Below are positions 5,624-62,068 of a DNA stretch of 64,000 bases, in pieces (position 1 is the stretch's first letter; the number at the start of each line of letters is the position of its first letter). The notes below the pieces were generated by a model that saw only the letters and a list, made by a program, of their open reading frames with translations, had not been told where the DNA came from and did not search any database. Origin of the DNA: Eutreptiella sp. 'Long Island Sound 2002' (taxonomy: Eukaryota; Protista; Euglenida). Position numbers and translations under genes: made by a program. Location: assembly GCA_964036045.1 (NCBI GenBank), contig OZ038379.1, positions 7,998,001-8,062,000 on the forward strand. The letters are read 5' to 3'.

Positions 5624-5765
5624 GAAATGCAGTCGCTCAGCAAGCTGTTGACTCTGGATCTGGGAACGGCACATGCCCCATGGTCACGGTAGAGTGCAAA
5701 CAACCCGAAGCGCGAGGAAGAAATAGCTGTCAGGTTGTCAAAATAGCTTGCTTCTTGCTCATTAT

Positions 5766-6165
5766 TGTGCTGTACTGTGTTTTGTGGTGTTTTGTGGTGT
5801 TTTGTGGTGTGGTGTGGTGTGTTGTGTTGTGTTGTGTTGTGTTGTGTAGTGTAGTGTAGTGTTATGTTGTGTTGCGTTGTGTTGTGTGTTGCATTGTACC
5901 CTGTTGTGGTGTGGTGTGGTGTGGTGTGGTGTGGTGTGGTGTGGTGTGGTGTGGTGTGGTGTGGTGTGGTGTGGTGTGGTGTGGTGTGGTGTGGTGTGGT
6001 GTGGTGTGGTGTGGTGTGGTGTGGTGTGGTGTGGTGTGGTGTGGTGCGGTGCGGTGTGGTGCGGTGTGGTGTGGTGTGGTTTGTTGTGTTGCGCTGTGCT
6101 GGGTTGCACTGTGTTGTGTTGTGTTGTGTTGTGTTTGGTTTGTATTGTGTTGTGTTGTGTTGTGT
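5766..6165. repeat. (GTGGT)n/(GTTGT)n pentanucleotide microsatellite
   Basis: About 400-bp compound pentamer array; it explains the spurious HHTTP/VVWCG ORFs. Confidence 0.97.
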
Positions 6166-9290: not shown

Positions 9291-9426
9291 GGCACAACGC
9301 CTCGGTATCTGATTGTTTGCCTTTGGCGGCGCCTATTGGCCTCTGGCCACTGCTCATTCTGACCTTCTGTGTCAACGGAGCCCCTGGATGACTTGTCCTG
9401 TTTGACTACTCCAGGGTCGGCTGTCC
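9291..9426 (+). repeat. Dispersed short repeat family (second copy 46362-46519)
   Basis: GGCACAA.GCCT.GTATCTGATTGTTTGCCTTTGGCGGCGCCTATTGGCCTCT...GACTACTCCAGGGTCGGCTGTCC occurs at both loci, each after a poly-G run. The second copy has an internal insertion of about 23 bp. Confidence 0.85.
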
Positions 9427-12400
9427 CGGAGACGGGCTGTTGCCCGTGCCGTTGACCAGGTGCATCCAGATGCACACTCCGAGTCCATGCCGGGTTTGCC
9501 GACTCCAGCACGGACTTGTGTGTGCGGGGGGGGGGGGGGGAGTACAGTTGCGCTGCGCGCACCGCAGAGGCCAGTGATCCCGGGAATGGCCGGTGTCTTT
9601 CCCGCGATTTCCCACTTCCCATTGGACCCTTTCCACTCCTGCCAGATGGCCCCTGGTTGCGCTACTACTTGCGCACGGCACCCACCCAGGCCATTGCCTA
9701 GGCCCTTAAGGGGGGGATAGTTTGGGCCCTAGCCAATCCCAGCGTATCCCCACCCACACCAGAGAATTGTTCAACAGGAAAAATGAAATTTATTGAAGTG
9801 GTCCAGAATGGGAGGCCCAATGAAAGTACCAAACTTGTTTTTCTGAACCCCCCCCCCTTTGCCGCTGAGCACTGCCTGCTCCCACTTTTTGCTCTGACTA
9901 TCCTGGGAATGGACCCTTAACCACCCCCAACACAAACACGCATAACACACTTCTCATTGTGCTCTTTACACTCTTGTCTGGTGAACCTCACTTGCCTGAA
10001 TATCCTCCCCCCGTGCCCGCCCCACCACAGGGAGGCCGCTCCCCGAATACCTCCCGGGAGACAGTCACCAAATGACGGTCACTCAGAATGGTTGGGTGGG
10101 GTGGAGATGGGGGGCACAAATCACATTGAAACACCAATAACGTTTGTGCATACCTTACCACACCTTTGTACGAGCAATGCATTCACAATTGTGCACTGTC
10201 AGGTACCAGGCCCTTACAACATGTATCACACAGGATAGCACTGCCGGGCACTGTGCTCACAGGCTCTTGCCTTCCCTGTGCTCCTTCCTTGGACTCCAGG
10301 TGTGTGTGTGTGTGTGGGAGTGGGTTGGGAGGGGAAAACAACATAAAAGAGGGAGGCCTGCATGGGTCCAGGGCCCCTAGCGGTTGCCTGAGGCGCCAGC
10401 TTACAAGACAAGTGGTGCAGTCCTGACGGCTTGTGCTCTTGTCTCTGGTGCCTGCTCGGGTCGCGGTAGGGGGCCTCGCCTGAGCCAGAACCTCCGGGGC
10501 TGGGGGGTTATGTCACCTCCGTCCCTACTCTTCCATGCCGTGCAGCGCTGGGCAACCGTCTGCGCATCCTCTTGGCTGGGGAGGGGGGTCACGTCCACCC
10601 TCCCTCGCTTGTGGGGCCGTTCCCATGTCTTAGTCGAACCAAGTGTCTACCCGGAAACCGGCTATCTAAATCGTGATAGGCGAACCGAAAAAAGTCGAGC
10701 TACAGCACCGAAATTTGAAGTAACAAAAATTTTTACCTAGCTTTCCGGTGCGTGAGACACAAAATGAAGAAAAACGTAGCCGAAAAACAATAGTCAAAAG
10801 TGGGGTATTTACTATGGGGAGGGAAGAAATGTAGTGGGAGAACATGGAAATCGAGGGTAAAGGACATAGCTGATTTGTGAGGGGTAGGGTAGAGGGGAAG
10901 ATTGAGTTAGACAAATGAAAACATTTTAAAAACCTCGTGGACACCTGACAGTCATGGACAACGCATAAACGTCACGAGCAAAACAGGCACGCAGAGCATA
11001 GGGTCAAAAGCAATAGCGACAATTTCAGATGATGTCTTTCAAATGATGCAATCTTTCTACTCGGTGATTGTGCCGAGCAGCTCAAGGAGTGCTCCGTTAA
11101 ACTAACGATCAGCCTTTCAGCAGTGAAAGACATATTACTCCGGACCAGATGCTATCGAAATTTCGATAGCACAATATACAAAGGAATCTGTCGTCGATGC
11201 CTATCGAAATCTCGATAGGATTAAAACATAAAAATCTGAAGGGATGAGGCCAATCGAAAATTCGATTGACGAGAAAAACAGCATGGGTGGCAATCGAAAC
11301 AGAGGTTCTATCGAAATTTCGATAGAAGTCAACAACACATCTCCATGAGAAATTAAAAACGGAACCTAAAAATATGACATATCCTCGGCTACTTCTTGGT
11401 GGTAGCCCGACTAGGATGAGAATCCTTGTGGGGCGAACCCTTCTTCTTGGGCTGATCCGTAGCAGCCTTCGACAACTTGGCCTGAAAATCAGCAAAAGCA
11501 AACTTCTTCTTCTCTTTTTCCTTCTGTGCTTCTTCTTTCTTACCTTTCGCCGATTCCTTTGCCGCTTCCTTTGCTGCTTCCTTCGCCGCCTTTTCGGTTT
11601 CCTTCTGCAGAGGAAGGGCGAAAGAATGCATGAAGGAAGCAAAACATCAGTGCAGATATGAGCATATAAACAGACATACTTTCTCCTGAGCAGCCGCTTT
11701 TTTCTGAGCTATACTTCGTGGCAACCAAGGAGGGGAAGATCAAGACCCTCAAGGAAGCCAAGAAGTGGCTCAACGAGCAGGAGCGGGTGGACGCTCCGCA
11801 GGTGGCTGCCAAGCGGTGGAAGTCCATCAAGCTTCATCTTCTTTCGTCAAGGCCTTGCTGACTTTCTTCTCAGTGTCCTTCGCTGCCTTCGCTTGACCCT
11901 TGACTGTGTCCTTGTCGTCGTCATCGTCGGAAGAATCTGTGACAGAACAAATAGGGAAGGAAAGGAACATGACCAATTTGATGAGATGTTTAACTTTCAA
12001 TGCATACCTTCGTCAGTGTCAGGAGCCTCAAGGGGATAACCCCGTTTCATCCGATCGAGAACAAGATCCCATGAGATCGGTGGTAGGGCCTGTACTCTTT
12101 GAAGGCCAGCTGAAACTGTAAGAAAAAACAGAAAAAATGAGTTGAGGAGTCAATTGTACTCGGGGTGGAAGGGAGGACTTGACACATACCATCATCAGCA
12201 AACTTCTTCAATTGTTCTTTGCTTGGAGCCGTTGACAAACCAAGAAGAACGGCAACGTTAACGTGAGAACGGAGACGAAGCCGGATGTTGCTCACCAGAA
12301 CGGGGGATGTAGTCTGAACGGCAACCCAGATCTCGTTAACACTTTCTTCGATAACATCCAATTTGGGTTGATGCATGATGCAGCCGAGAACCTCTGGAGG

Positions 12401-14836
12401 AAGTCGATTGTCATCTTCGGCCGGATTGTTGTACCGCTCGTCTTCGAAGGTAATGTACCTCGGAGGCTGCAAGAAATCGAATCGAAATTTCGATAGGAGG
12501 AAGTACGCAAAGCGAAGCTATCGAAATTTCGATAGAACACACCTTCCATTCTTTGATATGGCGCAATGTCACGACAACGAGCTGGGAAGTTGCCATGGTG
12601 TAATTGCTGGTCAAAATCCCCTTATTGTACAACGCGATGTCCCTGGTATAGAACTCATCATCCGTTGACGCAGCGATGGCGTTCAGAACAACGCGGACGT
12701 CAGGACGATCTCCAACCAAAAGCAGAACGGGCATCAACTCCTCATCAAGAACATAAGACAACATCATTGGACACAGGGGGCGTCCCGCAGCGGTACCCTT
12801 CGGAGTCTGATACACGAGAATCCTCGGTTTCAGCCCCGAGATTGCAGCAGGGGTTGCACCGACAGCTGGCCCGATGCGGACTTCACAGACTGCCTCTCCG
12901 GGTTTGGTTTCACCAAGCGTTACTGTCAGACATTCTGCCGACGTACTTTTGATCACAGGCTTCACCTTCGGTTGACTGAGGGATTCGCGGAGGGTCTTGA
13001 AATCCTCATCAGACCAGATCGGGGCCTTGCTGATGGTCGTCCAAGGCGGCAAAGGATGCTGTGCGGTCCACTTCCAGCACGAGATATGCACCTTGAAATC
13101 CTGGGGTGACAGTGATGAAGTTATTCTCTTCCACTCAGCAAAGTTTTTCCGAGACTCGTGCACGAAGGGGTTGTCCGGATGTTCCAAATGCCAAGAACAA
13201 GTTCGCTGCTCCCGAAGTCTCCGAACGAAGACCTTAAGCAATGGTGGCGTCAGACCACCTTCCAGCAGCCTTTCACAAACCTGTGAAGATATGTCCGATG
13301 ATGACTATGTTGTTTTAAATAAGAATGACGCAAGGAAAGTAACTACCTGCGCAATCTCCGGCGGATACAATCCCTCAAGCGGCTTATTGTTGTTGAACAC
13401 TGGGTTTAACTCGTCCTTCCCCTTAAGCTCGATGAGTTTCGGAATGATCGCTTTGTCCTCAACTTGGGAAACGAAGCTTGCAAGAACCGTCCATCGCTTT
13501 GCAACTTCTTCGTCTGTGCCGTGCACGGCAGTGTATCCGGTCTTGTGCATCATTGATAGCGTTGCGGCCTTTGGGGTAGGTACTCCTGCAGATAGATAAT
13601 AAGGAAAACATTGGTGATGTGATGTAAATCCACGTGGACCCGCTATCGAAATTTCGATAAAGACCTTTGAGGTGACACTCGGTGAAGAGGCGATGAAGTC
13701 GTTGCTCAAACGTATGCTCAGATCCGCCATGGGATGCCCGGTTGTGATGCCCTGCGAGGGTTTGTCGAACCCAAAAGGGTGTGTCCGCTCTCAAAACCAA
13801 CCCGTCGTACATCTTTGTCCAATGAGGCGGTGTCTTGCCTTCTTCTTCGTACTGCCTTCGTACATCCTGGGTCCATTCGAAAGCATGTTGTCCGCCGAGA
13901 CACTTGAATGTAGCGCCTGACGAGGAATCGTACAATCGAAATTTTGATAGAAGGTACGATGTAATCGACTGTAACGCGGCACGGTAATCAATCGAAATTT
14001 CGAACGCAAGGTATACCTGTTGGAAAGAGCAAGTACTCAATGTGTTTGTCCTTCGGTGGTGGAGCAGCAAGGATGTCATCACCAACCAACGCTTTCTTCT
14101 TGGGAGTAACCGTTCTTGTTTGGCCGAAGCTCATGTCGCGGTCCAGTTCGATCTTCGAGTAATGGACAAGTTGTACAAGCAAAACAAAACTCATTCAAAG
14201 GCCATATGACTTCCTGGTGCGCAGCACCTCGACGTCATGAGAGGTGGTCACCTCCATAGAGACTCGTACAGTGACAGTATGGGCGGGCGGGTGGGACCCC
14301 ATCCCCTCCTCCCTTCCTTTGGGTGGGTGGGATGGCCCTGTTATAGTTTATAAAATTTTGAATGTAACAGGGCATCATAATGAACAAAACAAAGTATGGT
14401 GTACAACTACTGTTACTGGGGAAACAGCAGTTGTACAAGCAAAACAAAACTCATTCAAAGGCCATATGACTTCCTGGTGCGCGGTCTTTGTGATTCAGCC
14501 AGCACCAAGCCATACTCCAGCGACCATAAATGGTGTTGTGCGTCCCCACGCGGTCATGACACCTCCAAGCACAGACACCGTGGGAAACGCCGCAGCGAAC
14601 TCGCCACTGCATTCCAGCCAACAAGGCGTCCGGCAAAGAGTACGAGGCCGCGTGGTCGTGGAGAGGCCACCAGAGTTGATACCGACTCTAAAAAACAGGT
14701 ACCGGTAACGAAATGCAACCGTGCCGGGTCAGGTCCCTCAGGGAAGGCAGCCTCTACGGGCAAGAAGATCCCAGGGACCCGCCGAAAAGTGGCAAGAGGC
14801 CACCAGCATCCCGCCCTGCGAAGCGTTCCGCCAACA

Positions 14837-17622
14837 CTAAGAGACAGCCCCCACAGGACATTCTGCAAGTTGGCGGTCCATAGCAGTGCGCCCCTTGGGC
14901 AAATTCGCAACCCACACAGGGCAAGGGAGGGCGGGGAAGGCCTGCAGGGACCGAAACCTGTCCCAAGCTGCCAACCCCGCCGCAGCGAAGTCGCCGCCAA
15001 AACCACCGTCAATACGGGAGAAACAGTCGGCCGGGTTCAACTCGCCTGGGACCCACTCAAGGAAAACTGTCGAATCAGATCTCTGGAGGAGGTAGAAAGC
15101 TCTGCGCAAGTTCCTGTTATGTCTCTTTAAACCGGACCGGGCGCGCATTCCCGCAATCTGGCCGATGGAGGAGGCATTGTCACCGACCAACCTGAAAACA
15201 GGCCAGCCCACATTGACTATGAAACTAAGGCCCCGGACAAGGGAGTCCAACTCTGCCTCCTGCTGCGTCAAAACTTCTTGCCCACAGCGAAAAACCCTGC
15301 CCCCCAGTGCAGGACCCCAGAGACCCACCTTGAAGCGGTCCAAATCGAAGGCAGCGTCGACGAAAACGAGGCCTCTGCCCGCAGAAGAGGGGGAATCGAC
15401 TCGCCTCGGAGTCCAACCACGCCGCGACATGACAAGGCAGTGCAGGAGGCTATGAACCAGTTTCAAGGGGGCTGAGGGCAAAAAGGAAGAGCCCCACATA
15501 ACGTGTGACCACCAACCAGCCAAAAAGGGGCAAGCGCCCACCTGGGGTCTCAGGGCCCACGAAAAACGGCCAATAACCCGTCGAGCGAGTTTCCTGGACA
15601 AAGGCAGCAGCGCAACCCGCAACCATAGACCCAGCAGGACGATCCACTGGTCGGGGACCACAAAAACGCCCTGTCCCGCCCCCGACAGCACCAATCGCTT
15701 ACCCAACCAGACAATGGACGGCACAGGCTCAAGGATGCTCTTGGGGCTGATAATCGCCCCCTCACGTCCCAACAGGTCACAGAGGCGCGCCGCCGCTGAA
15801 CGCACGTTGCCTGCCCCGAATCCCAAAACGAGAAAATCATCAAGATAGTGCAAAACCAAACCCGAGACCAAGTCCAGCCCTTGCAGTAAGTAACCAAGCA
15901 CAGTTTGGCAAATCACTGGAGAGTATTGCCATCCAAAAGGTAGGCAATCGAAGGCGAATGTTTCCCCGTCAATACTTACTCTGAAGGCCTGCTTGAAGGC
16001 ATGGGTAAACGTAACGACCAGAATGCATTCTTAAGATCAACATGGCAGGCCAGCAGGGGGGGGGCCTCAGGAGCCTCCAAACGCAGGTCATCGAGCGCGC
16101 GCAAAAACGGGTCGCACAAATAGCGGCCCACATCTTCAGAAAACGCAAGACACCCCTGGCCCGCCCGCAAGTAATGCAGCTCAATGAGGAAAGCCAAATC
16201 CTCCACGACCGGGAGGGTGAAGGACGGCGGGCGGTTGGCATGCTGTTTATTGAACTGCACTAAATGCACTATCATAGATGCTTTCTCCGAATTTTTGAGA
16301 ACTGGGAACAGCCAGCCATTAGGGGGGAGGTTGGAAGGGCACCGAGTCAAAATGCCATCCCGCACCAAGGCTCTTGCCATCACCAAACCTTCAGGAAAAA
16401 TATTTCGAATGCCCGGTAACGCGCGCGTAGACACCGACAGGACATCATTAGGGGCCACTGCATGCCAAATGAAGTCCGGGATGCGAATGTTACCCACCGC
16501 CCCAATTCCCCTCTCCAGCACGTCCAGGGATAATCCCACCAGGATCGGTTTAGGAGACGTCGATTCACGAAACACCACAGGCCAAAGGTCTGGCTCCAGG
16601 CGGTCCAGCGCTGCAACAGCCGCCTCCAGAAAATCAAAAACCCCCAAATCCCTCGCCACCACATTACCCCTCATCAATAATAATCGGATCCGGGACCTGA
16701 CGAGACCCCTGTCCGCGAGAGGCACCCTTAAGCCTTCGGACACGCGATCCAGCCATTGCTGTCCCCGGCGGGAGTTCAACAGGAGCTCCCAGCCCTCTTC
16801 CTCGACACCGCATGCGAAGAAGTCCAGACCCGCCGCTTCCTCCTCGCACAACGGGGGCGGTGCGCTGGTGGTCCCGGGCCCGTCCCTTGAACTTCGCCGC
16901 GACGGACTGGTGTTGGGGGGGACCGCCGGCTCTGACCGCTGAGCCGGACTCGGGGGCTGGCGCGGTGGTGGAAGAGTCGGGGGCAACGCCCTCTCCTGTC
17001 GGACCTCCAGGAGGGGAGTCTCGGGCCGGGGAGGACGGAACCGTTCGGCGCTCTGTGGTCGACGCGGACTGCGAGGTAGCCACCGACGGACCCGAGGGGG
17101 TCGACTGCCCGGTTCTCCGCGAAGGTTTTCGAGGCGGCGCGGGTCGTGAGGGTCGCTTGGCGGTTGGCGGCTGTACAGCGTCCCCGGAGTCGTCCCCTTC
17201 CACCACGGCCTCGGAACCCCTGTCGCGCTTCGATCCGGTGGCCGGGAGTTTAGCGGGTCTCTCGTCCGGTAAGCAGAGTCCCATGAGCGATGACGGCCAG
17301 AACTCCGCCGTGTCGGTGGTGATCCACTTGACCCCCTGACTCGTTGGCCATGGTAGGCACGAACTCGAGTGGAAGGTGAAGTCCTCCGGCGCCGCTGCAT
17401 AGAAGTGTGCCATGCGCACACTGGCCCAGCGTCCCCACCAGCACAGGTAGCGCCAGGCCACGGAAGCGGAGGAAGGTAGCCCCCGCGCGACGCCACGAGT
17501 GCCAGCGGTAAGCAGCGTAAGGGCTGCCTTGGAGCAGCCTGGCCATACCCTCTTCGAGGACGGCGGCTCTGTCGACCATGACGTCCCGTCCAGGGAACTG
17601 GCGCCGCAACCAGTGGGCCCAC
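14837..17622 (-). pseudogene. pol: Reverse transcriptase-RNase H of the YR retrotransposon (one frameshift near 16000)
   Basis: FPVLKNSEKASMIVHL, VDLKNAFWSL, then (frameshift) AFRVSIDGETFAFDCLPFGWQYSP, HYLDDFL, VWLGK. RNase H motifs: FVDAA, QQEAEL, VGDN, WVPGELNPADCFSR. Confidence 0.93.
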
Positions 17623-18284
17623 TCGCCCACAAAACTGCCGAGGTCACGGGGAACCCAGCGCGAATCCCTTTTGAGGCCCCAGAAAGCCACCGCCTTCCCC
17701 CGCAGGCCGGAGCGCCGGACAGATGCGATTTCCCCCACGCGTGTGAGGCTGCTGAAGGAGAGGACGGCGGCGGCGAAGACAGCCCAGTCCTCCGGAGTCT
17801 AGAAGGCCTCGGCCATGACGTGCAGAACATGGGGGCCTGCGTAAGGGCGGTCTCCCGGGGTAGCCACCGGCGCACGGGCGAGGCGCCAGAGGCGTTCCCA
17901 TCGGAGCGGTGGTATCCACCCCATGACCCACACTGCGTGTAACGCCGACACGGCGCCCCGCAGCGGTGCGGGCCGATATCCCGACCGGAAGGGGAGGAGC
18001 AAAATACTCTCCGCCAGGCTCTGCGTGTCCCCCGCCGGTGCCGACCCATGGAAGAAGGCGATTCGTCGAAGGTGTGAACCACAGGAATTCCGTGTCCCCT
18101 CCTTCCAAGTGCTGATGAGGCATGTCTGGACATCGTCCGCCGGATCCGCATACCCGAGCTCTCGCCACAAGGCCGCGATGGATCTCCAGTCGATGGTTTT
18201 TCCGACCCACTCTGATATCGGTGCCACTGCTACCGCCGAACTCGCCAACTCCAAGACCGGCTCCAGCCCCCCTGGCGCGTCGCG
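16664..18284 (-). pseudogene. Tyrosine recombinase (one TAG, one frameshift)
   Basis: Core-binding-like region (STWKEGTRNS...GYRPAPLRGAVSAL), then TAG at 17801-17799, then LTRVGE (R) and RWHSWRRAGAT (HxxR). After a frameshift near 17460 comes GRWASVRMAHFY (W, catalytic Y) and a low-complexity tail overlapping the RT frame. Confidence 0.9.
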
Positions 18285-19316
18285 TCACTCAAGAAAGGGA
18301 CACCTCCAGACCCAGTGACGGGTCACCTCACCACGAGCCTTGCAAGTCTTGCATGGGCCGACGGGATCCTCAGTCGTGCGTACCCACTCATTCTTGTGAA
18401 TCTCGAAGAATTCCTCACCGTCCATGATCTTGAAACGCCGTCGCATAGCCTTCTTTAGGCGCTTGCCCGCCTCCGACAGGCCCTCCTCCAGCCGAACATC
18501 CGATTCCTTCTGAGACCCAGAGGTAGATGAAGAACCAGTCGTCCCCTCGTACCGCTCTTTATAAGAGGCCGTCGCAGAGAAAACGAGCGTCCACAGCGCT
18601 TGCACCAGGGTGTGAAACCTCTCAGAGACCTGTGCGGAGTCCGGCGTGTCCATACTGTCTGACCCATCTGGGTGTTTACGGTCGGTCCACGGCGTGTCGT
18701 CCATCTTGTCCTCGTCAGTGAGGCCCAGCATGATCTCCTTAGCCGCGGTATCGGACATTTTGGGAATCATAGTGACTGCGGAGGCAGGGACATTCTCGAA
18801 TTTGAGCAGCCGTACCAGGAGGAAGAGAGCACGATTAATCCACTGGGGGTGGTTGGTGGTTGTGTCCGCATCGTGGATGGCCTTCAGCGATAATGCAGGT
18901 ACCTGCAACTGGTCCTTCGGCGGCGCCTCAGTGTTGCTTTGGACCTTGGCGGTAAGGGACTTGATGAGCTGTCCCCGGTCCTCCAGCAATTTAAGGATCG
19001 CAGGGTCCACCTGTCCAGGCGTCGGCACTGTCGGTGCTGCGGAGGAAGACTTCTTGAACGCCCCAGTGGCGAAGTCCAGCGTGACGTCTTCCAGAAGCAT
19101 GTAACCCACCAAGCGGTCAATGAATTCCCGAGAGCCCGTGAACGAGACGGTGGACGCGAAATTCTTAGCCCAGGCCTCCCCCTCGTCAGGCATCCCCCGA
19201 AGTTCCCGCATCAGGACCAGCTTTCGACGCGTCCATGACTTGGTATCCGCCCCAAGTCGAAACTCCCCATGGGCGTCTCCTTGGATGTAATCCGCGAACG
19301 ACAGTGCATCCTCCAT
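18285..19316 (-). CDS. gag: Gag-like ORF of the YR retrotransposon (343 aa, intact)
   Basis: Open from ATG 19316 (MEDALSFADY) to TGA 18285. It ends in a CCHC-type knuckle, CKTCKARGEVTRHWVWRC. Confidence 0.75.
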   Translation of the reverse strand: MEDALSFADYIQGDAHGEFRLGADTKSWTRRKLVLMRELRGMPDEGEAWAKNFASTVSFTGSREFIDRLVGYMLLEDVTLDFATGAFKKSSSAAPTVPTPGQVDPAILKLLEDRGQLIKSLTAKVQSNTEAPPKDQLQVPALSLKAIHDADTTTNHPQWINRALFLLVRLLKFENVPASAVTMIPKMSDTAAKEIMLGLTDEDKMDDTPWTDRKHPDGSDSMDTPDSAQVSERFHTLVQALWTLVFSATASYKERYEGTTGSSSTSGSQKESDVRLEEGLSEAGKRLKKAMRRRFKIMDGEEFFEIHKNEWVRTTEDPVGPCKTCKARGEVTRHWVWRCPFLE

Positions 19317-20292
19317 TTCTATACTGCTGCGCTGCCACCAAATGAACTCAACGAAACCAGAAGGAACAGCTCTCAAAGGAGTGGAAGTAGGTCAGCTGTT
19401 CGGCCTGCGCAGCAAAAGGAACAACACCTTCGTCTGAAGGCCCTGTTATAGTTTATAAAATTCTGAATGTAACAGGGCATCATAATGAACAAAACAAAGT
19501 ATGGTGTACAACTACTGCTACTGGGGAAACAGCAGTTCTCGGGACTCAACCCAATCGTCCATATAGACCCCAGAAGTATCATGCCATTCCTCAACCTCTG
19601 CGGATGTCGCTGCTCTGCCCTGCTCCGCAACGATCTTCTTCTTCTTCTTCTTCGGTGGAGGGGACTGAGAGAAAAGCGCGGCCTCGGAAGTATCCGTTCG
19701 GGGGCTTGCAGTGTCGGTTGACTGCGAATACGTTTGCGATGGAGGCTCATCAGAGTCCCCTGCCGGCTGCGACCGCTTCTTCTTCTTTATCCTCTTCTTG
19801 GGTGACAAATGGGACTCACCGGACATTGGGCAAATGTACTGAGGGTGATTAACGGGGTAAAACCTGTGCGCAAACGAGCTGAGGAACTCGGAAATGGGCG
19901 ATTGGGGCGACAAACGTGCTACTTTGCTGGTGAGACCAAACAGTTCTGTCTCGGTTTTTCAGTACCTCTAAATGTGAAGCGATCAAGCTCGGATTCATCG
20001 GTTACATTCCACTTAGAGTCGTAAATGTGTCGGAAATGCAATCGAAATTTCGATTGAGGCAGTGGTCTATCGAAATTTCGATAGACCGCGGACGAGATAC
20101 CGAGAAACGTTGTCTGATAGACAGTTAGGTTTAGATAGATGACTTCCAAGGAGATCAACTAGATGACTTCGAAGGAGCATTGAACCAAGCAAAGAAAGGG
20201 TGTTGCATGATGCAACGATTCGATCAACTACGTACGCACTGAAATTGCAACACACAACCGTGCAATCGGAATTTCGATAAGCGACTCAAATC

Positions 20293-22373
20293 TCAATGTT
20301 CAGCGGCAAGAAGCCTCGGACCTTCGGCCTCATCAACTATATGTTCGTCGTCCTCATCAGGTTCGCTCTCGCTGGATGGCGGGTCAAAGAGGGCAGGAGG
20401 CGGGCCACGTGGCTCTCTACGGAGGCGTCCCTGGTATCTGTCCGAAGGGGGATGTGCTTCAAGCGACCGTGTTGTTTGTAGTTTTTTCCAAGCTTTCACA
20501 TAGGAAACACGATCAGCAAGAGGTGTTGTAGGAATGTGGGTCATATAGTGATGGATTCCCTGTGTTACATCTCTGTGTTTGCACATTAACTTGAGAGCCC
20601 GAATCATGCACATATCAAGTAGGGGGGAGTCAACAGTTAGGTCAAGTGCAGGAAGGTAACTGGGATCCCATACAGGATCAGGTGTAACTGTCCTGTGTTT
20701 GGACTGGAACCGTGTGAACGGCGTGTTAATATCGGCAGCCCGTTGAACAAATGAACGTATCGTAATAACAAAATGTGTAACCAGATGTGGCTGGACCGAA
20801 GATCTTTCTGCAAGGGGGGAAGGGTGCAGTAGACATCACTTGCGCGAGAAAGATCTGTGACCTGTGGCAGCAGGGTGAGAGCATGTCCCAAACGTGACAA
20901 AAAGGCTTCACAACTTTCCTCAACGAACAGACAATCCGGGACCATGTCATACCACAACTGCCATGTACCGAGTGCAGTGCATAAGGTCCGAACATACTCT
21001 ATCTTGGGAGCATGCTTTTGTGTAAAGGAGACCAGTAAAAGCAGACAATGTTCAAGAACAGTGTGTGCAGTCTTCCCAGAATCCAGAGCGGCCCCGGCCC
21101 AAGTACATTCTCGAACCCCATACCCAATGGCCCAGAGTGCAGGTGTGAAAACATACAACAAACTGTACAGCAACTGAATCTTTTGATATGCCACAGTGTT
21201 TTCAAGATTCATTGGTCGTCTAAGGGTGGACAATCTTTCTCGAGCTTCGGTGATAAGACCTTTCAACAAGTTGCCCGCTAACAAAAGACCGGCTAAAACC
21301 TTTTCCATGTATATGAGCTTCCTGTGACATGGAATGCTAGTCCGCACCGTGATAAACGGTTTGAGGAGCCAAGAAATAATGGGAAAGAAACGCCTGAAAG
21401 TAATGTGTACACAATATTTGTACGGATGCCAAATGCCATAAAGCAGTGGAATGCGTTCCAAATGTGACCGGTAGTCCAGACTTCTCGGCTTCGAACGGTA
21501 CATGAAACGCAACAGCGATGCATGTATTTTTATGTCGACCAGCAAAGGCAGATCCCGGCCCGTATGAATCTGTATGCGACGCACCATCTCAATTAACTGC
21601 AGCAGCTCAGTGTTTGTGCTTGTTCGACACTCGTCCAGCAGCATAGGTTTCCAAATTTGTGGATGCACGATACCCCTGGCGATGCCGAGTGGCGCGCGGA
21701 TGAAATGTGCCTGTAACGTCCCGTCCGTAACAGCTGCAATAGTGTTCAGTAGACCCCTGATGGAGGTCCGAATGCATCTCATGACACCTGGCAGTCTGAA
21801 AACTATGCGGCGCAATGTGAGATGTCCAGGAAATCGTGGCAGCAAGATTGTATGGAGCACGGCTACGGCAGAACAGTCAAGATGTCCCGGCGGTCCATTG
21901 GGGTTCTGCAGGAATCGTTTTCTGAAAAAATTGTCCATCCATATGCCAACAGAGGGTTTGCTCATTGCATTCCAGAGGTCCGTCGCTGCTGCAACACCAG
22001 ATTCCTGCAGAGTCGGTATTCGAGGTGGAACTATGCCAAACCTTGCGAGTAACTTCCGTTCGCGCTGCGAAACAGTAATGTCCAGAGCCGGGCGAAAAGC
22101 TAGGGGTGCCGCACGGAGGTGCAGCACACGCCAGATGTTGAAGAGTTCCTGCTGGAGTACGCTGAGCCATCTCGGCAAGGGTGTGCAGTTTCTGTTGGCA
22201 ACCACCTGCTCAAATGTCTGGCGGCGGCGTTTGGTTATCCTTATTCCAAGGACAAATTCAACAAATCGCCTTGACGTACCGCCTTCGCAAGCATCTTCAA
22301 TAATTTGGCGTCCATTCTCCCAAGAGCGCGAAGCGAGGAATCCTCGCACGTAGGCAATGAAATGGGCATCCAT
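20293..22373 (-). pseudogene. DDE transposase, KDZ (Dileera-like)/RAG1-Transib class; 578-aa ORF plus probable frameshifted C-terminus
   Basis: Motifs in order: IWMD147N, WKPMLLDE, LLVD280IK, YGIWH316, EY460VRTL, FVE485ESCE489A. This is an RNase-H-fold DDE triad with an insertion of about 205 aa between D2 and E. A more protein-like C-terminus continues in other frames to 20293. Confidence 0.7.
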
Positions 22374-23296
22374 CTTTGGCGTACACGAAACTCGTACATG
22401 AAATAGAAGACAACAAATAGTCTAGCATGTAAAATCTTTGAATCTCTGTCAGACTGTCACTATCGAAAATTCGATTGGAGTTTAAACAGCCTATGCTTTA
22501 GCGGCTATCTAAATTTCGATTGGACGTTCCTATCGAAATTTCGATAGGAATTGAATTCCTTTTCAGTCGAATGCTCCTATCGAAATTTCGATTAGAGATG
22601 CTCCTATCGAAATTTCGATTGGTTTTAGAAATAAATCCATTGTGTATGCATCTCCATCGGATAAAACATCCAGTTGTTTTTTATTTCTTTTACCTCTTTT
22701 TTATTTTACCTTTATTTTTCTACTAAGTTGTAATTTAAAATTCATATACTACTGTAGTACAACTATGTTCCGATAAACCTTCTTGAAAAATTTTCATGGT
22801 TTGCTCTCTGAATTTCGTTAAAGACTTGCAATCGAAATTTCGATTGATCCATGCAAGGCAAACTGTCACGTAGTCTGGACAATCGAAATTTCGATAGCAT
22901 CATTGCTTTTTCATTCTAATTTTCACATACGCAGACTATCAGGCGTCGAGTTGGCAAAAAGTTTGATGTAGCTAATCGTGCAACCAAAGTTTCGATACAT
23001 GAGACTTCTTGCCTACATTGTGGACTTCCCTGGGTCTCTTTGCTATTCGAACAACAAACAACATGCAGCAATTCAAATAAAACACACTGAAGCGCATATT
23101 TGCATGCGCGTGGTATCACGGTGGTACACAACTGCTCATGTACTTGCACAACCACTGTCTTTTTGGGACATTTCTTCTTTCTTGGGATTGGCTTCATGTT
23201 CTTTAGCCGATTTTTCACACCGTGTGACACGTCGCTTTTTTGGTCCGCTTTCCGGTGACAGGGGCCCATTTTGGGTGGACACTTGGTTCGTCTAAG

Positions 23297-23700
23297 CATG
23301 TGAAGCCTGGTGGCCGAGCTTGCTGGTGTCTGCGCCGCTTGGCTGATGGTGTGCCCCCTGCCCCCGGGGTATGCGCTGCCGTTCGACGTGCCCCACCACG
23401 CGGACCCTGCAAGGCCGCGGACGGCCGGGGATGCCCGGCGTGCCCCCTGGCACAGCAGTGCCGCACTCCCCTGCCCACCGCCGCACATGACGCACATTGA
23501 CTATGTTGGTGTGCCGCGCAGATCCCGAGGCGTGGGAGCCGAGGTTGTTGCTCAGGGCGTCTTGCTACCGTGCACTTCGGCGGCGGGGTAAACATCGCCG
23601 CCCCACCGCTCCGTACTGCCTCCGCTGTGGCATCCTCCGCGTCTGCTACTCGGTATTGCGGGCCTCTCCTGGCTCCCGGTGGCATCACCGGGCCCATATA
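23297..23700 (+). mobile_element. Possible decayed non-LTR retrotransposon segment split by the TIR element (continues from about 10500-10628)
   Basis: The empty site reads through (PSLVGPFPCEAWWPSLL). Downstream, RLLLRASCYRALRRRGKHRRPTAPYCLRCG resembles a LINE ORF2 C-terminal CxxC region. Weak and stop-ridden. Confidence 0.3.
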
Positions 23701-31600: not shown

Positions 31601-34600
31601 AGGGGGGGGCTGAACCATGAAGGCTAAGAAGTCCAGCCCGGTGAACCACCTGTTCGCAGCTTGCCTGTGGACAGGGGTTCAAATGAGGCTGAGGGAAGAA
31701 GGGGGCGAGGAAATGGCGGGGCACGAGGATCGGTCCCGCTGAACCAGTTCGAGGGTTGGGCCGTCGAAGGAGGGAAAGTGGCAACGCAACCCCTGCCTTC
31801 TCGGAGTCCCCGGGGCGGAGAAGTCTTTGTCGGGGGCATTTCGGCCCAACAAGATGCCCGGCACGCCAGCGTTCCCTCAGTGCCCCCCAACGGACAGCGC
31901 CCGCCAACTGAAAGTACTGAACGCCCGGCCGCAGTGGCGGATCGAAGAGGGCAGACCTTGCGGCAGAACGGACAGCCCTGGAACTCCCAGATCTGAATGG
32001 GCTGCTCTGGGCGCGTGGCCGGGAGCGTGGCCGACTTCTCCGCGACCCGGCGGCCGGCCGCGCGGAGGAGGCTGTAGCTCTTGCCGTCGTCGTCCTCAGC
32101 GATGGACGGGGACCAGCTGTTGACGAGCGCGCCGTTCCAGAAGCGGAACATGGCGGGCAGGGTCGCGAGGATCACCCGCAGTGTCTGGCCCTCGGGGATG
32201 GAGAACTTCTTGGGCTCTGGCGGTGTGAAACCCTCCGGCACCTGGAAATTGGGGTGGGGGTGTCAGCGACACATTGTCTGCGCATCACCGGGAGGGGTCC
32301 CTCGGTTTGACACGTGACCCTCCCCCCTCCCCTTCGCCTTGGTAACTGTGGGCCCAAGGGTCCTACATGGGGGTCCAAAAGGGGGGGCTCCGACTCCCTC
32401 AGCACTCATCATCACGTGCGGCCCCAGCCCGGCATTCCAAGGCATGACGAGTTCCCACGAGGGCGGTGCCGTTACTTCCGGGTGTGAAAAATGGAACTCG
32501 CGTTTGCCGCACACATAAATCACCCCCCGTACAACATACGCCCTCCGGGTCTGCACTCCTGTTGGGGGGCTGTTGAGGAGACGACCGTCGGCATGCCTTG
32601 TGCACAGATGGTGGGGGGATGCATTTTGGTGCGTGAGCATGTCCCTCTGCTCACAGGCGCTGCTGCTGTGTGCCCACTCCACTGCCGGCGCCCGCACTTC
32701 ACACCCTTCGCACTTCACATGAAGTCGGTCCCAAGACCGTGCAGACTCAGAGGGTGCTCTCCGTCGCATCTGATGTGCAAAACGGAACCCAAGGCCAGGG
32801 CGGGCCCAATCCCCCAGTGCTACGCATCGGTGGTGCGCACCACTTGGGGGCAGGGAGGAACATGGCTGAGACCCCCCACATCAGTGCAGTGGTGGTGTCT
32901 TTGCGTGTGGGGCGTCCTCGAGCGCCGCGCTGGAGCGGCTGGGCCGCCGCCGTCGCAGGCGTGCAGCCTTCGACGGGTGGGATGAGGATCGACTCACTTC
33001 ACGTGGGCAAATGGATCCCGTGACTGGGGCCCCTGTTTCTTTGCGTGGGGCCTATGTATGACCCTTCGGTGATGTTCAGTCAGTCACTCAGGAGCAGGTT
33101 CCCGGACGCTACATGAGCAGTGCCGCCCTCGCCACTCTCCGCGTAGAGAAGGTCCATTGCTGCGCACATCCTGCAGCCAAGAGGCTGCGGACAGTTCTGG
33201 AATCTGATGCATGGGATTGCGGCAAAGATGCCACGCCGAAGCAAATATCACCAAGCACGGGATCCACCCACTCCCACCCCTTGAAGCCCCCCCCCCCCCC
33301 CTGTGCACACCGGAGCACCAGCGCACGTCCAGTGCGAGTCACATGGAGGCAGGAGCTCCGGAAGCCAGCACAAAAGAGCCGTCGGACGTGCGCCGGCATC
33401 CTGAGCCCGGCCCACCGACGCCCGCAGTCCCGTTAGTTGGCGATAGTCGCGGCCTAACGCCCGTACCGCCGACTGAGTCGTGGACAACGGGTGGCTGAGC
33501 AGGTTGCAGACCGCGAGGGGGGGGGGCTGGCGCAGGGCACAACATCCGCTTCACCTGCCTATCGCGAAGGCAGCAGTGGTGGACATCTGGCCTCATGGAC
33601 CCAGAGAGGCCCCCTGAGCACACAACCGACGCCCTGCGCCCGACAGTTGTGCAATACGGTGCAAGGGTCGCGACCCAAACCCAAACCCAACCCCCCCCCC
33701 CCCCCTGTGGCGCACCAGCCACGCATCCCATGCTGTCGGGCCGCCCCCCTTACCACCCCCCCCCCACGGACACCAACAAAGAACAATGAGGAACAGCCGA
33801 CTTGGGCGCAAGTGGCGTCCGGAAATTTTTTTTGCCTCTGTGGACTGGGGCACAGAATTGCCCCCCATTGCCCCCCATTGCCCCCATTTCCCCCCTTATT
33901 CCCCTCGTTCGTGGTGAATGGTAAAAGGAGATTCTACCCCCCTCGAAGTTGTGTATATTCAAAATGCTCCGAATGAAACGGGGGATCCAAAAATACCCCC
34001 CAACACGGGGGGGTGACCACAACCGGTCCTGATGCGACCCACCCCCCAACTATCTTTCAAAACTCGGGGGGGGGGGGGGGGGGGCAGTTGGGGGCGGGGT
34101 CCAGCCAGGGGTCGGGGGGGGGGGGTTCCTGCCGGGGGTCGGGGGGGGCGTCTGGCCGGGGGTCATGGGGGTGTCCACCCAGGGGTGAGGGGGGGGGGGT
34201 TTAGGGTTAGGGTTAAGGTTAGGGTTAAGGTTAGCCCTAGGGTTGGGGTTAGGGTTAGGGTCACCGAGCTGGTGGAACCAGTCTTGGTTTTATAACCCTT
34301 TTTAGGGTCTAGGGTGGACCTACCAGGTTTAGCAGCAGCAGCAGCAGCAGCAGCAAGCAAGCAGCAGCAGCAAGCAAGCAAGCAGCACGCGCGAAAATGG
34401 GTAAAAATCAGTACTCCGTCGTGGTGCTTTGGATTTGGTTGAAATTTTGGTGCATGATACCTATGGGTGTGAAGTACAATCACACAAAGTTTGAGCGAGA
34501 AACTCAACGGTGGCGGCCGGGAACGGGATTTGCAAGTGGCGGACCTCACTTTCAAAAACTGCACTTTAGGGCCAAAAACAGCCATTTTTGGGCTTAAAAA

Positions 34601-37600
34601 GCCCTAGAACACATTCAAAACGGCCAAACGAAGGGAAACGGTGGGTACACTCCACGTGCTGCTTGACTTCCCTGTGTCAACGAGCTCTTTGCCGCCCTCT
34701 AACTCCATGACATGTCCCGGAAACGGCCCAAAAAGGCCCCCAGAAGCTTCAAATGCCGACAGCCACAAACCAAGAATAGGCCATATCTTTGGCTACATGG
34801 CTCAAAATGCGATTCCGAGGGCACCTACTCCACCCGCAACCCCCCACTTTTTGTGGTTTCCACCCCTTAGAATTGCCCAAACGGACGCCTACACCCTCGT
34901 ACTTAGGCCCACTAGGCTGCGGCAAGCTGCAAGCTCAAGCCCAAACAGGTGGGTGCCCAAATGGGTCATTAGGGTCCAGTAGGGGCAAAAAGATGACTTT
35001 TCTGAAAAATGATCCTAGACCATGTGCGACGCTAAAACAAGTGTTTTTGGACCATTTTGAGCTTGTGGTGGCCCATTTTGGTCCTCCGAAAATCTGAAAA
35101 TGCCTTGAAAAAAGGCTGTTTTGTGACCAGAAATGGGTCAAGAATGGGTCAAAAACGCGTTTTTCCAAAAATCATCCTAGACCATTTGGGGTGCACAAAC
35201 GGGTGAAATGAGCCCATTTTGAGCCCATTTTGGGGCATTTTGGCCCCTCATAAGTCCAACAAAAGCCTTGAAAGTAAGCCTCGTGGTGATGGGGTTCACT
35301 TGCAAGCTGATTTCACTTTGTTAAGAGCCATCAATGTGTGAATCATTCTTGATGTCCCTCACCAGTCATAGCTAATGTTCCCTCCCCCACCAGCTCGGTC
35401 CCAATATTCGGTCTTGATTAGGGCTAGGGTCACCGAGCTGGTGGAACCAGTCTTGGTTTTATAACCCTTTTTAGTGTCTAGGGTGGACCTACTAGGTTTA
35501 GCAGCAGCAGCAGCAAGCAAGCAGCAGCAAGCAAGCAAGCAAGCAGCACGCGCGAAATGGGTAAAAATCAGAATTCTGTCGTGGTGCTTCAAATTCGGCT
35601 GAAATTTCGGTGGATGATACCTATGGGTGTGAAGTACAATCACACAAAGTTTGAGCCAGAAACTCAACGGTGGCGGCCGGGAACGGGATTCCCAAGTCGC
35701 GGACCTCAATTTCAAAAACTGTAGTTTAGGGCCAAAAATAGCCAATTTTGGACTAAAAAAGCCCTGGAACACATTCAAAACGGCCAAACGAAGGGAAACG
35801 GCGGGTACACTCCACGTGCTGCTTGACTTCCCCGTGTCAACGAGCTCTTTGCCGCCCTCTAACTCCATGACATGTCCCGGAAACGGCCCAAAAAGGCCCC
35901 AGAAGCTCCAAATGCCGACAGCCACAAACCAAGAACAGGCCATATCTTTGGCTACATGGCTCAAAATGCGATTCCGAGGGCACCTACTCCACCAACAACC
36001 CCCCATTTTTGTGGTTTCCACCCCTCAGAATTACCCAAACGGACGCCTAGACCCCAATACCTAGGCCCACTAGGCTGCGGCAAGCTGCAAGCTCAAGCCC
36101 AAACAGGTGGGTGCCCAAATGGGTCAACAGGGTCCAGTAGGGGCAAAAGGATGACTTTTCTAAAAAATGGTCCTAGACCATGTGCAACGCTAAAACAAGT
36201 GTTTTTGGACTGTTTTCAGCTTGTGGCGGCCCAGTTTGGCCCAAAATGCCTTGACAGTGGGCTGTGTTGTGACCAAAAATGGGTCAAAAATGGCTCAAAA
36301 ACGCATTTTTCCAAACCTCATCCTAGACCATTTGGGGTGCACCAACGGGTGAAATGAGCCCATTTTGAGCCCATTTTGGGGCATTTTGGCCCCTTAGAAG
36401 TCCAAAAAGCCTTCAAAGTGGGCCTTGTGGTGATGGGGTTCACTTGCAGGCTGATTTCACTTTGTCAAGAGCCATCAATGTGTAAATCATTATTGATGTC
36501 CCTCACTAGTCATAGCTGATGTTCCCTCCCCCACCAGCTCGGTCCCAATATTCAGTCTTGATTAGGGTTAGGGCTAGGGTTGTTGTTGCTGTTAGGGCCT
36601 GCAGCCCTCCTGTAGCCCTCCTTCAGGTCAAAATTTTTTCTTGCTGTTTTAACACAAATATGATTTCTCTACACAATTTTGAGTATTTTGAGTATAAACA
36701 CATAGTATGAAAAATAAATTTGGCGCCTTCGGCGCCAGACAGTTTTCTCTAGAGACACTTGTTGGTGGTCGACCCGGCACCACTATCTTTCAAAACCCGG
36801 GGGGGGGGGGGTGGGGGGGCTGGGGGGGGGTCGCATACAAGGACCGGGCCCGGCCACCCCCCCGTGCCCCCCAAACCCGGAAAAACGATAACCTCCCCGC
36901 CCCCTCCGGACTGTGCAACTAGCGTCTGCGCCACCCCTTCGCAATGTACATCGGCTGTCAGAGACAAGGCCGTGCCGGTGCCACCCCACACAGGGTGAGG
37001 CCCGGGTTATAAGCCTGAGGTGGACAATTATAATGTATTCGGATGACCTCATTCTCTTCATCGGGCGGACGGCAGAACCGGGGTTGTTCACTTCCATCCG
37101 GGGGGTTGTCTCGTAATTTTTGTACTTGTGTGGTGTTAAAATGAATCCGACCAAGACCTCGGCGATGGTTAACAATGAAGAAGGCCGGAACGGGCTGCTT
37201 GCTTTTTGGCAGGGGCAGGGGGGGGGGGGGGGGCAACCTCCCATTCCACGAAGCTGAAACAGGGTATCATTCTGAGCCCTCGGAGCGTAGGCACAGTTCT
37301 TTCACGCCAAGCCCCCAGCGCCCCCGCCCGCCCACAAACCGAAGCCCAAGCCAGCCCTGCTTCACCCCCCCACCCTTTGGAATGCATTTTCTCGCCAGCC
37401 GGAATGACATTGTGGTTGCATATTCGGTGTGTATGAGGTGCTCTGCAACGGGGCAGGCCTTGAACAAGAGGGCAGGCCGTGCACGACACCATCTTCAGGC
37501 TTCTCTGCTGTTCTTTTTAGGGGCCAGACCAAGAGGAGCTGGCGTCGCCTGGTCACTGTAGGGTGCTCGAGATGACTTATTGGGATCAAGGTCCGGAGCC

Positions 37601-57921: not shown

Positions 57922-59079
57922 CTGAGGAATGGAGACCGACCTTCCCCAATCCATTCCACTGCTCACACCGAAACATCCACAAAAACAATCCATCCATTCG
58001 ATTCCCAGGGCTGACACAAAATCAAATAGTAGTAAAATCAAATAATAGTTTGACCAGAAAACAAGAACGGCTGCGAAGCCTCTGGGTCCCTTGGGAAGTG
58101 ACTGCACCAACCCGTCCTGTTTTGGGTTGGATGGACAGTTAATTTAGATAGCCGCCCGTGAAGTTCCGTTGCATTGATAAGCAAAGGAACCCAGTGGACA
58201 AGCGGTACACACTGCGACTGTCCTTTGGTGAGCTTACTTCGTTGGAGTCAATGCCGCCTTGGGTGGGGACACCCAGCATGCCTCAAAAGAAACATGGACA
58301 CCGATGCAATCGGAACACCACCGATGCAATCAGAACACCACCGCCGCTCCTCCTGTGCTCCGAATTCCCATATGTGCCTGAGATGCGCTTGCTGCTACAA
58401 CCCGAGTCCCGTCGGGGTTTGCAGCTCTCATCTCAACTCTGAGCTCTCACCGGGGCACCAGCTCAAGAGATGCCCCAGAAGGGGCACAGGCAAGAGGCAA
58501 ACGCCGTGCACCGACAATGGTGCAAATTTGGCCTCTCGCGGGGGGTTAGGAAGGGTGGGGGCTCCACTAAGGCGGGCCGCGGAGAGGTTGTAGCTTTGTG
58601 AACCTGCTGTTGTTGATCGAGCTGGCGCCATAGGTCAGGCGGTTCCTGATGGGTCTGTGCTCGGGCTGAGGGCCAATGGACCCTGGAGCCGTGGATGGGG
58701 AGCCGTGGGTGGCGGGCTGCATCACCCATGGCACTGTCGCCTGTCACCCTTGTTGTGGCCGCGGCCCATGCCACCACGATCCGTACACCTCTGGTCCTTC
58801 CGCTGGTCTCTGACAAGAGCATGGCCCTAGATTGGCCCCAGCGCGCACCACACCTCTAAATATCCCGAAGCATTCTCCATCTGAATTTTGACCTTCAAGT
58901 GCTCGGACTGGCCCCAACCCCTCAGGCAGACCGGAGCCGAATGCTGCAATACCATGCGGGACCCAAAGAACGGATGCACAGCAAACGTCCCGCAGTCCTT
59001 AGGGGCGTGGAGCAGATCATTTAGAGCCCTTGTACCTGCGCAAAATCCCAGATGAGACTCAGAGAAGGAAAATCACATA

Positions 59080-61972: not shown

Positions 61973-62068
61973 TCGGCTGGAGGGTCGGGGGGGGGGGGTG
62001 TCGGCTGGAGGGTCTGTGCAGGGGTATGCGCCCGCCAGCGCCAGACGATGGCTCCCCGCCAGACGACT

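Follow-up and report, generated by a model that had tools for sequence, protein, structure and literature searches.

A two-gene DNA transposon with 5-bp target duplications in Eutreptiella that probably represents a new lineage of eukaryotic DDE elements

The window analysed here, a stretch of 64,000 nucleotides from the euglenid Eutreptiella sp. 'Long Island Sound 2002', contains a segment of 12,668 bp (10629-23296) with 24-bp terminal inverted repeats (TIRs) at both ends and a duplicated CATGT outside them. The left TIR (10629-10652, plus strand) begins CTTAGTCGAACC and forms the 3' end relative to the genes, while the right TIR (23273-23296), whose minus-strand reading is CTTAGACGAACCAAGTGTCCACCC, forms the 5' end; the two agree at 22 of 24 positions and the right one matches the 5' TIR of the intact copies L004-L008 exactly. 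A search of all 64 kb for the TIR returned these two sites alone, with a chance expectation of 0.00. The target site duplication (TSD) is read directly at 10624-10628 and again at 23297-23301. Between the ends lie two genes, both on the minus strand, namely an intronless transposase gene (22373-20293) and a multi-exon companion, here called gene 2 (19826-11389), with its ATG at 19826 and its stop near 11389. Imperfect TIRs starting CTTAG, CATGT on either side and two genes on the same strand had all been described in the original prediction, and each was recovered. We also sought an empty site in the window and found none, and neither an Rfam search nor a search with a spliced-leader pattern gave a match.

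The transposase is 697 amino acids long in intact copies. In the window the gene has lost 13 bp near 20805, which puts it out of frame from about residue 523 onward, and the open reading frame (ORF) first taken for the transposase (22373-20637), which does carry all of the motifs listed for it, encodes 578 amino acids that are not the true protein. Gene 2 is also damaged, as a 5.36-kb retroelement sits in its exon 1 and a 132-bp high-copy repeat in its last coding block. Judged from these lesions, the window copy is inactivated three times over and would be unable to move on its own, because its transposase is frameshifted and its second gene is interrupted twice. This triple inactivation had previously been missed. 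Subtracting the nested insert of 5,361 bp (14173-19533) and the 132-bp insert (11705-11836) leaves an element of about 7,176 bp.

Four complete sister copies in a public assembly measure 7,177, 7,193, 7,202 and 7,833 bp, and the first three of these, all intact, agree with the earlier estimate of roughly 7.2 kb for the element without its inserts. The sisters L004, L005, L006 and L008 are flanked by the TSDs AAGCA, AATTG, TTTTT and TTGTG, respectively, and share 95-98.8% identity, with dN/dS between intact copies of 0.19-0.37. At 90% identity the transposase falls in a cluster of 45 members that includes five ORFs of 697 amino acids, one of 701 and one of 682. The same assembly also holds distant lineages, specifically L003 (6,978 bp, perfect 24-bp TIR, TSD TCATT) and two deleted derivatives with intact TIRs, L011 (4,320 bp, TSD ACTTT) and L012 (2,900 bp, TSD TGTCG). 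Their transposases are only 32-38% identical, yet they have CTTAG-type ends and a 5-bp TSD, and in a tree of 37 proteins they are scattered over one of the two major clades. The conserved TIR pattern is 24 bp long (CTTAGRC...CAA...CCCACC), with CTTAG...CTAAG termini in all lineages that have complete elements. Altogether, CTTAG-type TIRs with a 5-bp TSD were found in 8/8 complete elements from four lineages, which is the combination of TIRs and fixed-length TSD in multiple copies expected of a cut-and-paste element and bears out the consistency of the TSD on which the original prediction depended. In two metagenomic relatives, L009 and L010, CTTAG ends were not found within their contigs, so that the terminal signature is proven inside one assembly only. 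The transposase would recognise the TIRs and integrate the element through a 5-bp staggered cut.

At E<=1e-3 the transposase family comprises 827 representatives and it has no Pfam model. An alignment of 33 members shows D147, N148, D280, E485, E486 and E489 to be invariant and A490 nearly so, and between D280 and E485 the invariant columns are G313, W315, H316, Y318, E357, G417, R421, W425 and Y460; the catalytic motifs noted previously (DN, VD280xK, GxWH316, Y460, EExxEA and others) are not only present in the window ORF but conserved in the alignment. An AlphaFold2 model of the protein (pLDDT 84.6) predicts an RNase H-like DDE core in which a long insertion, helical throughout, separates the second Asp from the Glu. 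Strand 141-151 carries D147, D280 comes after strand 277-279, and E485, E486 and E489 are at helix 486-501. Conserved Asp, Asp and Glu residues thus sit on an RNase H-like fold, and D147, D280 and one of the three glutamates are the candidate catalytic residues. The N-terminal 120 residues of the window protein contain two scattered cysteines and no more.

Comparison of the model with known and predicted structures in Foldseek placed DUF6589 proteins nearest (E 5.6e-9 to 2e-6, probability 1.0), with a TM score of 0.63, in an atlas of structure clusters, to one that has DUF6589 in 35% of its members. Unnamed clusters from fungi and cnidarians score 0.61-0.66, and the alignments in these comparisons cover 446-466 residues. 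The top PDB matches are DDE enzymes throughout, led by the P element transposase (Z 12.0) and Hermes (Z 10.4) and followed by Transib (Z 8.8) and RAG1 (Z 7.6), the last two reaching Z 6.4 and 6.3 in a wide structure search. This was part of the check suggested with the original prediction, and of the families it named DUF6589 emerged as nearest while Transib and RAG1 came behind the P element and Hermes. In Swiss-Prot the fold matches are hAT-derived proteins and THAP9, with E of about 1e-3 to 1e-2.

For gene 2, the exon structure with its GT-AG borders was worked out in the intact copy L008 and then transferred to the window. Its predicted GT-AG introns are short and some contain palindromes, for example 14014-13917 and 12544-12467. 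In L003 (e3 block, E 5e-12 and 4e-9) and L009, protein-level homologues of gene 2 follow downstream of the transposase, with position and orientation kept between elements whose transposases are just 33-35% identical, and three lineages, these two included, share the N-terminal motifs FGQxR and SGQH(R)xxAA. A Pfam search of gene 2 gave no match, and a model of its largest exon was unusable (pLDDT 34.5). The motifs may resemble a ParB/sulfiredoxin-type N-terminal domain; Pfam and PDB searches for a ParB-type domain were negative with separate exon pieces as queries, the domain being split by an intron.

All non-coding parts of the element are dotted with a palindrome, ATCGAAATTTCGAT, which occurs 19 times in the window against an expectation of 0, always within the element and never in the nested insert. 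Four copies form a 3' subterminal cluster (11154-11323), three lie between the transposase and gene 2 (20041-20278) and seven form a 5' subterminal cluster upstream of the transposase (22462-22895). L003, L009, L010, L011 and L012 have private, differing palindromes. Each lineage thus has its own palindrome of 14-22 bp, in many copies, some of which lie inside predicted GT-AG introns of gene 2.

Taken together, it is likely that 10629-23296 is an inactivated copy of an autonomous cut-and-paste family of about 7.2 kb that has been recently active in this genome and that combines a member of a large transposase clan with a conserved, predicted spliced second gene. Its closest recognisable relatives, judged by the predicted fold alone, are DUF6589 proteins; hAT transposases and the P element come next. 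None of the described superfamilies that we tested accommodates the element, which is probably a new lineage.

The alternative that survives best, although we judge it unlikely, is that the element is a divergent KDZ member, possibly of the branch that Pfam names DUF6589, in which the TSD has shifted from 7-8 bp to 5 bp. Structurally closest are DUF6589 proteins of rusts, Glomeromycota, cnidarians, molluscs and amphioxus, a taxon range that resembles the one reported for Dileera, and the fold match extends over nearly the whole protein including the N-terminal helices. KDZ elements are likewise large and carry extra ORFs (PMC11588098), and both are eukaryotic DDE elements with an RNase H-type core. 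A link through DUF6589 may exist. However, membership at the level of sequence is absent, as none of the 33 family members matches DUF6589 (PF20231) at E<=0.01 and the window ORF does not match it at E<=0.1; the KDZ domain (PF18758) is matched by neither of these at the same cut-offs, the intact L008 ORF and the L003 ORF gave no match to it either, and no CxC family was found by Pfam in the window ORF or the 33 members. KDZ elements have CxC zinc-chelating domains and the PF18758 domain, often with TET/JBP cargo, and TSDs of 8 bp in Zisupton and Dileera and 7 bp in Kyakuja (PMC12730594; PMC11588098), whereas those domains and that cargo are absent here and the TSD is 5 bp in 8/8 elements. We found no published description of TIRs or TSDs for DUF6589 elements.

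In our reading, the palindromes may be binding sites for the gene 2 protein, which would organise or regulate the DNA of the transposon. In bacterial ParB-parS systems, as here, multiple cognate palindromes of 14-22 bp accompany a protein that has GxxR-type and GxHRxxAA-like motifs, and in the present case the palindrome sequence varies by lineage; the resemblance is at motif level only, and in contrast to those systems the element here is a eukaryotic transposon with some of its palindromes in introns. A bolder extension is conceivable, though doubtful, namely that this is an undescribed eukaryotic DDE lineage at the level of a superfamily, whose transposition or maintenance would depend on a ParB-like partner loaded on lineage-specific parS-like palindromes; these are scattered over the element and would be tolerated in the partner gene only since they lie in spliceosomal introns. 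The opposite possibility is that transposition needs neither gene 2 nor the palindromes, which would be passengers, either host DNA picked up by the element or remnants of promoters and introns. Such a reading would accommodate the lack of a recognisable domain in gene 2 and the existence of deleted derivatives that retain intact TIRs and 5-bp TSDs, one of which (L012, 2.9 kb) is too short for gene 2. It is nevertheless quite unlikely, given that gene 2 is constant in position and orientation across such divergent lineages, that its N-terminal motifs are conserved between them, and that each lineage has a different, element-restricted palindrome which is present even in the short derivatives.

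Returning to the transposase, and to our view that it belongs to a lineage of its own, we also considered an extreme offshoot of the hAT or P superfamilies. With the P element (PDB 6p5a) the match covers 281 residues and includes the RNase H core and a helical insertion domain; identity is only 8-9%, THAP and GTP-binding domains were not found here by Pfam, and the P element TSD is 8 bp rather than 5 bp. Nor does CTTAG fit the terminal pattern of hAT elements. With hAT the fold match (Z 9.6-10.4) likewise includes a helical insertion. No solved structures match better than those of the P element and Hermes, and the Swiss-Prot fold matches are the hAT-derived proteins and THAP9; the E-values of the latter are, however, about five orders of magnitude weaker than those for DUF6589. 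The invariant G313-x-W315-H316, directly after strand 310-312, occupies the site of the C/DxxH motif of hAT, P, MuDR, Kolobok and Dada (PMC10045372), and it retains the His of that motif after strand 5, but an invariant Gly stands in place of the Cys or Asp at its first position. Lineages of hAT with a 5-bp TSD, hAT5 among them, do exist (PMC12730594), yet hAT dimerisation and BED domains were not found by Pfam in the window ORF or the 33 members, and a companion gene or palindrome arrays are not known from hAT. We regard such an origin as improbable.

A relationship to Transib/RAG1, suggested by a TSD that is 5 bp in Transib also, by the acidic motifs, by a DDE core that likewise holds an insertion domain and by fold matches across all of residues 118-529, is highly improbable, since both score below the P element and Hermes, no Cys pair or His pair lies among the invariant columns from D280 to E485 in the 33 members, whereas the CMC/Transib/RAG1 group is marked by C(2)C and H(3-4)H motifs (PMC12730594), and the ends are CTTAG, not CA..TG or CAC. 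The assignment to a KDZ/RAG-Transib class made in the original prediction was consequently not upheld by the Pfam models, the zinc motifs or the Z scores; its suggestion of an undescribed lineage stands, in that no tested superfamily fits and the 5-bp TSD is consistent, without the specific likeness to RAG/Transib. Academ elements carry a gene for an XPG nuclease or a helicase and have TSDs of 3-4 bp or 9-10 bp (PMC10045372); the TSDs here are 5 bp, and Pfam found neither a nuclease nor a helicase in any element ORF.

The two inserts in gene 2 are of separate kinds. The nested retroelement (minus strand), which is not a component of the transposon, has an RNase H ORF (RVT_3 match, E 1.9e-5), AGTT at both junctions and direct repeats of about 102 bp (14331-14432 and 19436-19537). 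The 132-bp insertion, which ends TG..CA and corresponds to an alignment gap in the sister copies, is a very high-copy repeat with a word depth more than 1000 times that of its flanks, and the joint without it (11704 to 11837) is present in all four sequence runs searched.

The element at 10629-23296 is a genuine transposon copy, now inactivated, with both genes on the minus strand, and belongs to an unnamed family. Its 24-bp terminal inverted repeats (TIRs), CTTAGTCGAACCAAGTGTCTACCC on the left (10629-10652) and CTTAGACGAACCAAGTGTCCACCC on the right (23273-23296), each read on its own strand, match at 22/24 positions, and the target site duplication (TSD) CATGT lies directly outside both, as the original prediction had accurately described. 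When the 64-kb window was scanned with a degenerate pattern (<=3 mismatches), only two TIR sites were found against 0.00 expected by chance, and a search within the window found no empty site. Of two checks on the euglenid host, an Rfam search and a spliced-leader pattern, neither gave a match. A chance inverted repeat can be dismissed, as eight elements are bounded by the identical kind of termini.

Comparison with intact sister copies shows that the 12,668 bp of the window copy consist of a transposon of ~7,176 bp and two later insertions. The larger of these is a nested retroelement of 5,361 bp (14173-19533, minus strand) that carries an RNase H (RVT_3) ORF, direct repeats of ~102 bp (14331-14432 and 19436-19537) and AGTT at both junctions; Pfam gave no match to RVT_1 in it at E<=0.1. 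The other is a 132-bp repeat (11705-11836) with TG..CA ends, which has no counterpart in the sister copies, and in public contigs of four runs position 11704 is joined straight to 11837. Word depth across this insert in public contigs exceeds that of its flanks by a factor of >1000, which marks it as a small repeat of very high abundance, probably a MITE- or SINE-like one of this genome. Compared with the intact ORF of 2,094 nt, the transposase ORF (22373-20637) has been cut short by a 13-bp deletion near 20805, the real C-terminus being encoded in another frame as far as 20293. The companion gene downstream (gene 2) starts at 19826, with exon 1 split by the retroelement and the last coding block by the 132-bp repeat. 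The copy has thus been inactivated three times. Separately, a short dispersed repeat lies upstream of the transposon (9304-9432) and again 37 kb away (46374-46525), the pair being 97% identical.

The family to which this copy belongs is large and recently active. At E<=1e-3 an exhaustive HMMER search recovered 827 representative proteins, of which 102 pass E<=1e-30, and the 90%-identity cluster (n=45) includes five ORFs of 697 aa and single ones of 701 and 682 aa. Five loci with intact 697-aa ORFs were taken from one public assembly (ENA ERZ25074135) and four of the five are complete elements, namely: 1) L004, 7,202 bp, TSD AAGCA; 2) L005, 7,177 bp, TSD AATTG; 3) L006, 7,833 bp, TSD TTTTT; and, 4) L008, 7,193 bp, TSD TTGTG. 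These sister copies are 95-98.8% identical among themselves and 91-94% to the window copy, and dN/dS among intact transposase ORFs is 0.19-0.37; L001, of a 76% subfamily, was left out because its indels and stop codons invalidate the comparison.

The same assembly holds three distant lineages whose transposases are 32-38% identical to those of the window family. L003 (9345-16322, 6,978 bp) has a perfect 24-bp TIR, CTTAGGCCACGCAAACTGCCCACC, and the TSD TCATT; L012 (9006-11905, 2,900 bp) has TIRs matching at 22/24 positions, CTTAGGCGTCAC..., and the TSD TGTCG; and L011 (8678-12997, 4,320 bp) has the TIRs CTCAG/CTTAGGCGGCCC... and the TSD ACTTT. A consistent 5-bp TSD in other copies, which the original prediction had left to be checked, is seen together with CTTAG-type termini in all eight complete elements from four lineages; their common terminal pattern is CTTAGRC...CAA...CCCACC and the eight TSDs together are 70% A/T. 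Deleted derivatives keep the ends and the palindromes considered below. In a maximum likelihood (ML) tree of 37 family proteins the four lineages are scattered over one of two major clades, which also includes the metagenomic relatives L009 and L010. Beside the deleted transposon copy of L011, gene calls recur every ~1.8 kb at 17985-21365 (ORFs of 212, 199 and 55 aa), which suggests a tandem array.

The residues that are invariant in a 33-sequence transposase alignment are D147, N148, R226, P228, R233, D280, G313, W315, H316, Y318, E357, G417, R421, W425, Y460, E485, E486 and E489, and the motifs originally picked out from the window ORF are all among the conserved positions. An AlphaFold2 model built from this alignment (pLDDT 84.6, pTM 0.75) has an RNase H-like core, in which D147 lies on strand 141-151, D280 comes right after strand 277-279, a helical insertion (~200 residues) follows D280, and EExxE stands at the start of helix 486-501. 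The best fold matches among AlphaFold DB clusters are DUF6589-annotated or unnamed proteins (E 5.6e-9 to 2e-6, probability 1.0) of rust fungi, Glomeromycota, cnidarians and amphioxus. ESM Atlas clusters gave TM scores (by query) of 0.63 for one from molluscs, with DUF6589 on 35% of its members, and of 0.61-0.66 for unnamed ones from fungi and cnidarians; the aligned stretches, N-terminal helices included, are 446-466 residues long. Solved structures were ranked by a first search and by a Foldseek-independent one, with Z scores respectively of 12.0 and 11.8 for the P element, 10.4 and 9.6 for Hermes, 8.8 and 6.4 for Transib, 7.6 and 6.3 for RAG1, and 7.6 and 6.7 for ISCth4; Tn5 (8.1) was listed in the second search only. 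Swiss-Prot fold matches are hAT-derived proteins and THAP9 (E ~5e-3). Judged by these structural neighbours, the protein is one of the DDE transposases that have an insertion domain; it has a specific affinity to DUF6589 proteins at the level of the predicted fold and is not particularly close to Transib or RAG1. Sequence-based searches gave less: Pfam had no match for the transposase in the window ORF, 33 family members or the intact and distant copies, PDB sequence and profile searches returned nothing relevant, an ESM Atlas feature search gave low scores only, and a word-indexed profile search aimed at DUF6589-annotated relatives recovered close family members only.

No traits of DNA transposon superfamilies are more conservative than TSD length and terminal sequence, and these can be set against the described groups. 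DUF6589 comes closest, since the fold is in common, yet 0/33 members match the Pfam model (PF20231). The original prediction placed the element in a KDZ/RAG-Transib class; the real transposon of an unnamed family and the 5-bp TSD stand, but the RAG/Transib class does not. Although a 5-bp TSD fits Transib/RAG1/CMC, the elements lack CA..TG termini, the conserved columns of the family include neither the C(2)C nor the H(3-4)H motif given for that group in PMC12730594, and Transib and RAG1 fall below the P element in Z score. A 5-bp TSD and acidic motifs are not enough to call an element RAG/Transib-like, a tempting over-reading that is corrected here. Membership of KDZ is opposed by the absence of a PF18758 match and of a CxC domain, and by a 5-bp TSD where KDZ elements have 7-8 bp (8 bp in Zisupton and Dileera and 7 bp in Kyakuja, PMC12730594; 8 bp in KDZ1 and KDZx1, PMC11588098). 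For hAT and P, Pfam detects no dimerisation, BED or THAP domain here. Academ, which makes TSDs of 3-4 or 9-10 bp and encodes a nuclease or helicase (PMC10045372), shares neither trait with the window family.

In the window family, L003 and L009, gene 2 follows downstream of the transposase, on the same strand, and its large exon has 29-38% protein identity to L003. N-terminal motifs on the two sides of an intron, (I/L)xLDxDMxFGQxR before it and (Y/F)xxxSGQH(R)xxAA after it, are conserved across lineages. We take these motifs to resemble the ParB/sulfiredoxin N-terminal domain, a likeness at motif level that searches of the exon pieces did not confirm: Pfam on all exons of three lineages, a homologue search, an Atlas search and PDB profiles of two separate N-terminal exon pieces gave no match, and the AlphaFold2 model of the 380-aa exon (pLDDT 34.5) is unusable. 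The public runs examined at the locus behave like DNA assemblies and contain no splice joints, and the gene-2 introns are predicted from genomic sequence.

The window holds 19 copies, against 0 expected, of a palindrome of 14 bp, ATCGAAATTTCGAT (in many cases lengthened to CTATCGAAATTTCGATAG), all within the transposon and none in the nested retroelement. L008 has 18, only in non-coding DNA (six upstream of the transposase, three between the genes, five between gene-2 coding blocks and four downstream of gene 2). Two gene-2 introns inspected have canonical GT...AG borders and two palindromes each, and such introns suggest a way to place cis-acting sites inside a coding region. Each of the other lineages has its own 16-22-bp palindrome, in 6 to >20 copies: GGTGCTGGCCCCAGCACC in L003, TTTGGGCACTGCAGTGCCCAAA in L011, CTGGCCGAAATTTCGGCCAG in L012, and TTTGCGTAATTACGCAAA and ACGCGTAATTACGCGT in the metagenomic contigs L009 and L010. 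These private palindromes differ per lineage and are element-confined wherever the ends are known (L003, L011 and L012); related lineages have cores in common, CGAAATTTCG in the window family and L012, and GCGTAATTACGC in L009 and L010.

Conservation of the DDE fold, its triad and the TIRs, together with the invariant 5-bp TSD and many near-identical copies, is compatible with a mechanism in which the transposase would bind the CTTAG TIRs, excise the element and integrate it by a 5-bp staggered attack, while the gene-2 protein may bind the lineage-specific palindromes as an architectural or regulatory partner. Palindromes and companion gene together make a testable case of a transposon encoding its own sequence-specific DNA-organising system. 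Because the literature searched has no description of this clan's fixed 5-bp TSD, CTTAG ends, conserved gene 2 and private palindromes, this large transposase clan without a Pfam model may be a further branch among the eukaryotic cut-and-paste elements, from a protist genome with few DNA transposons characterised.

Other repeats in the window are two tandem units of ~1,160 bp (34249-36573), 90-97% identical and each opening with TTAGGG-like repeats, and long GT-rich arrays of the GGTGT/TGTGG type with a period of 5-10 bp (5728-6163, 59036-59250 and 62026-63635).
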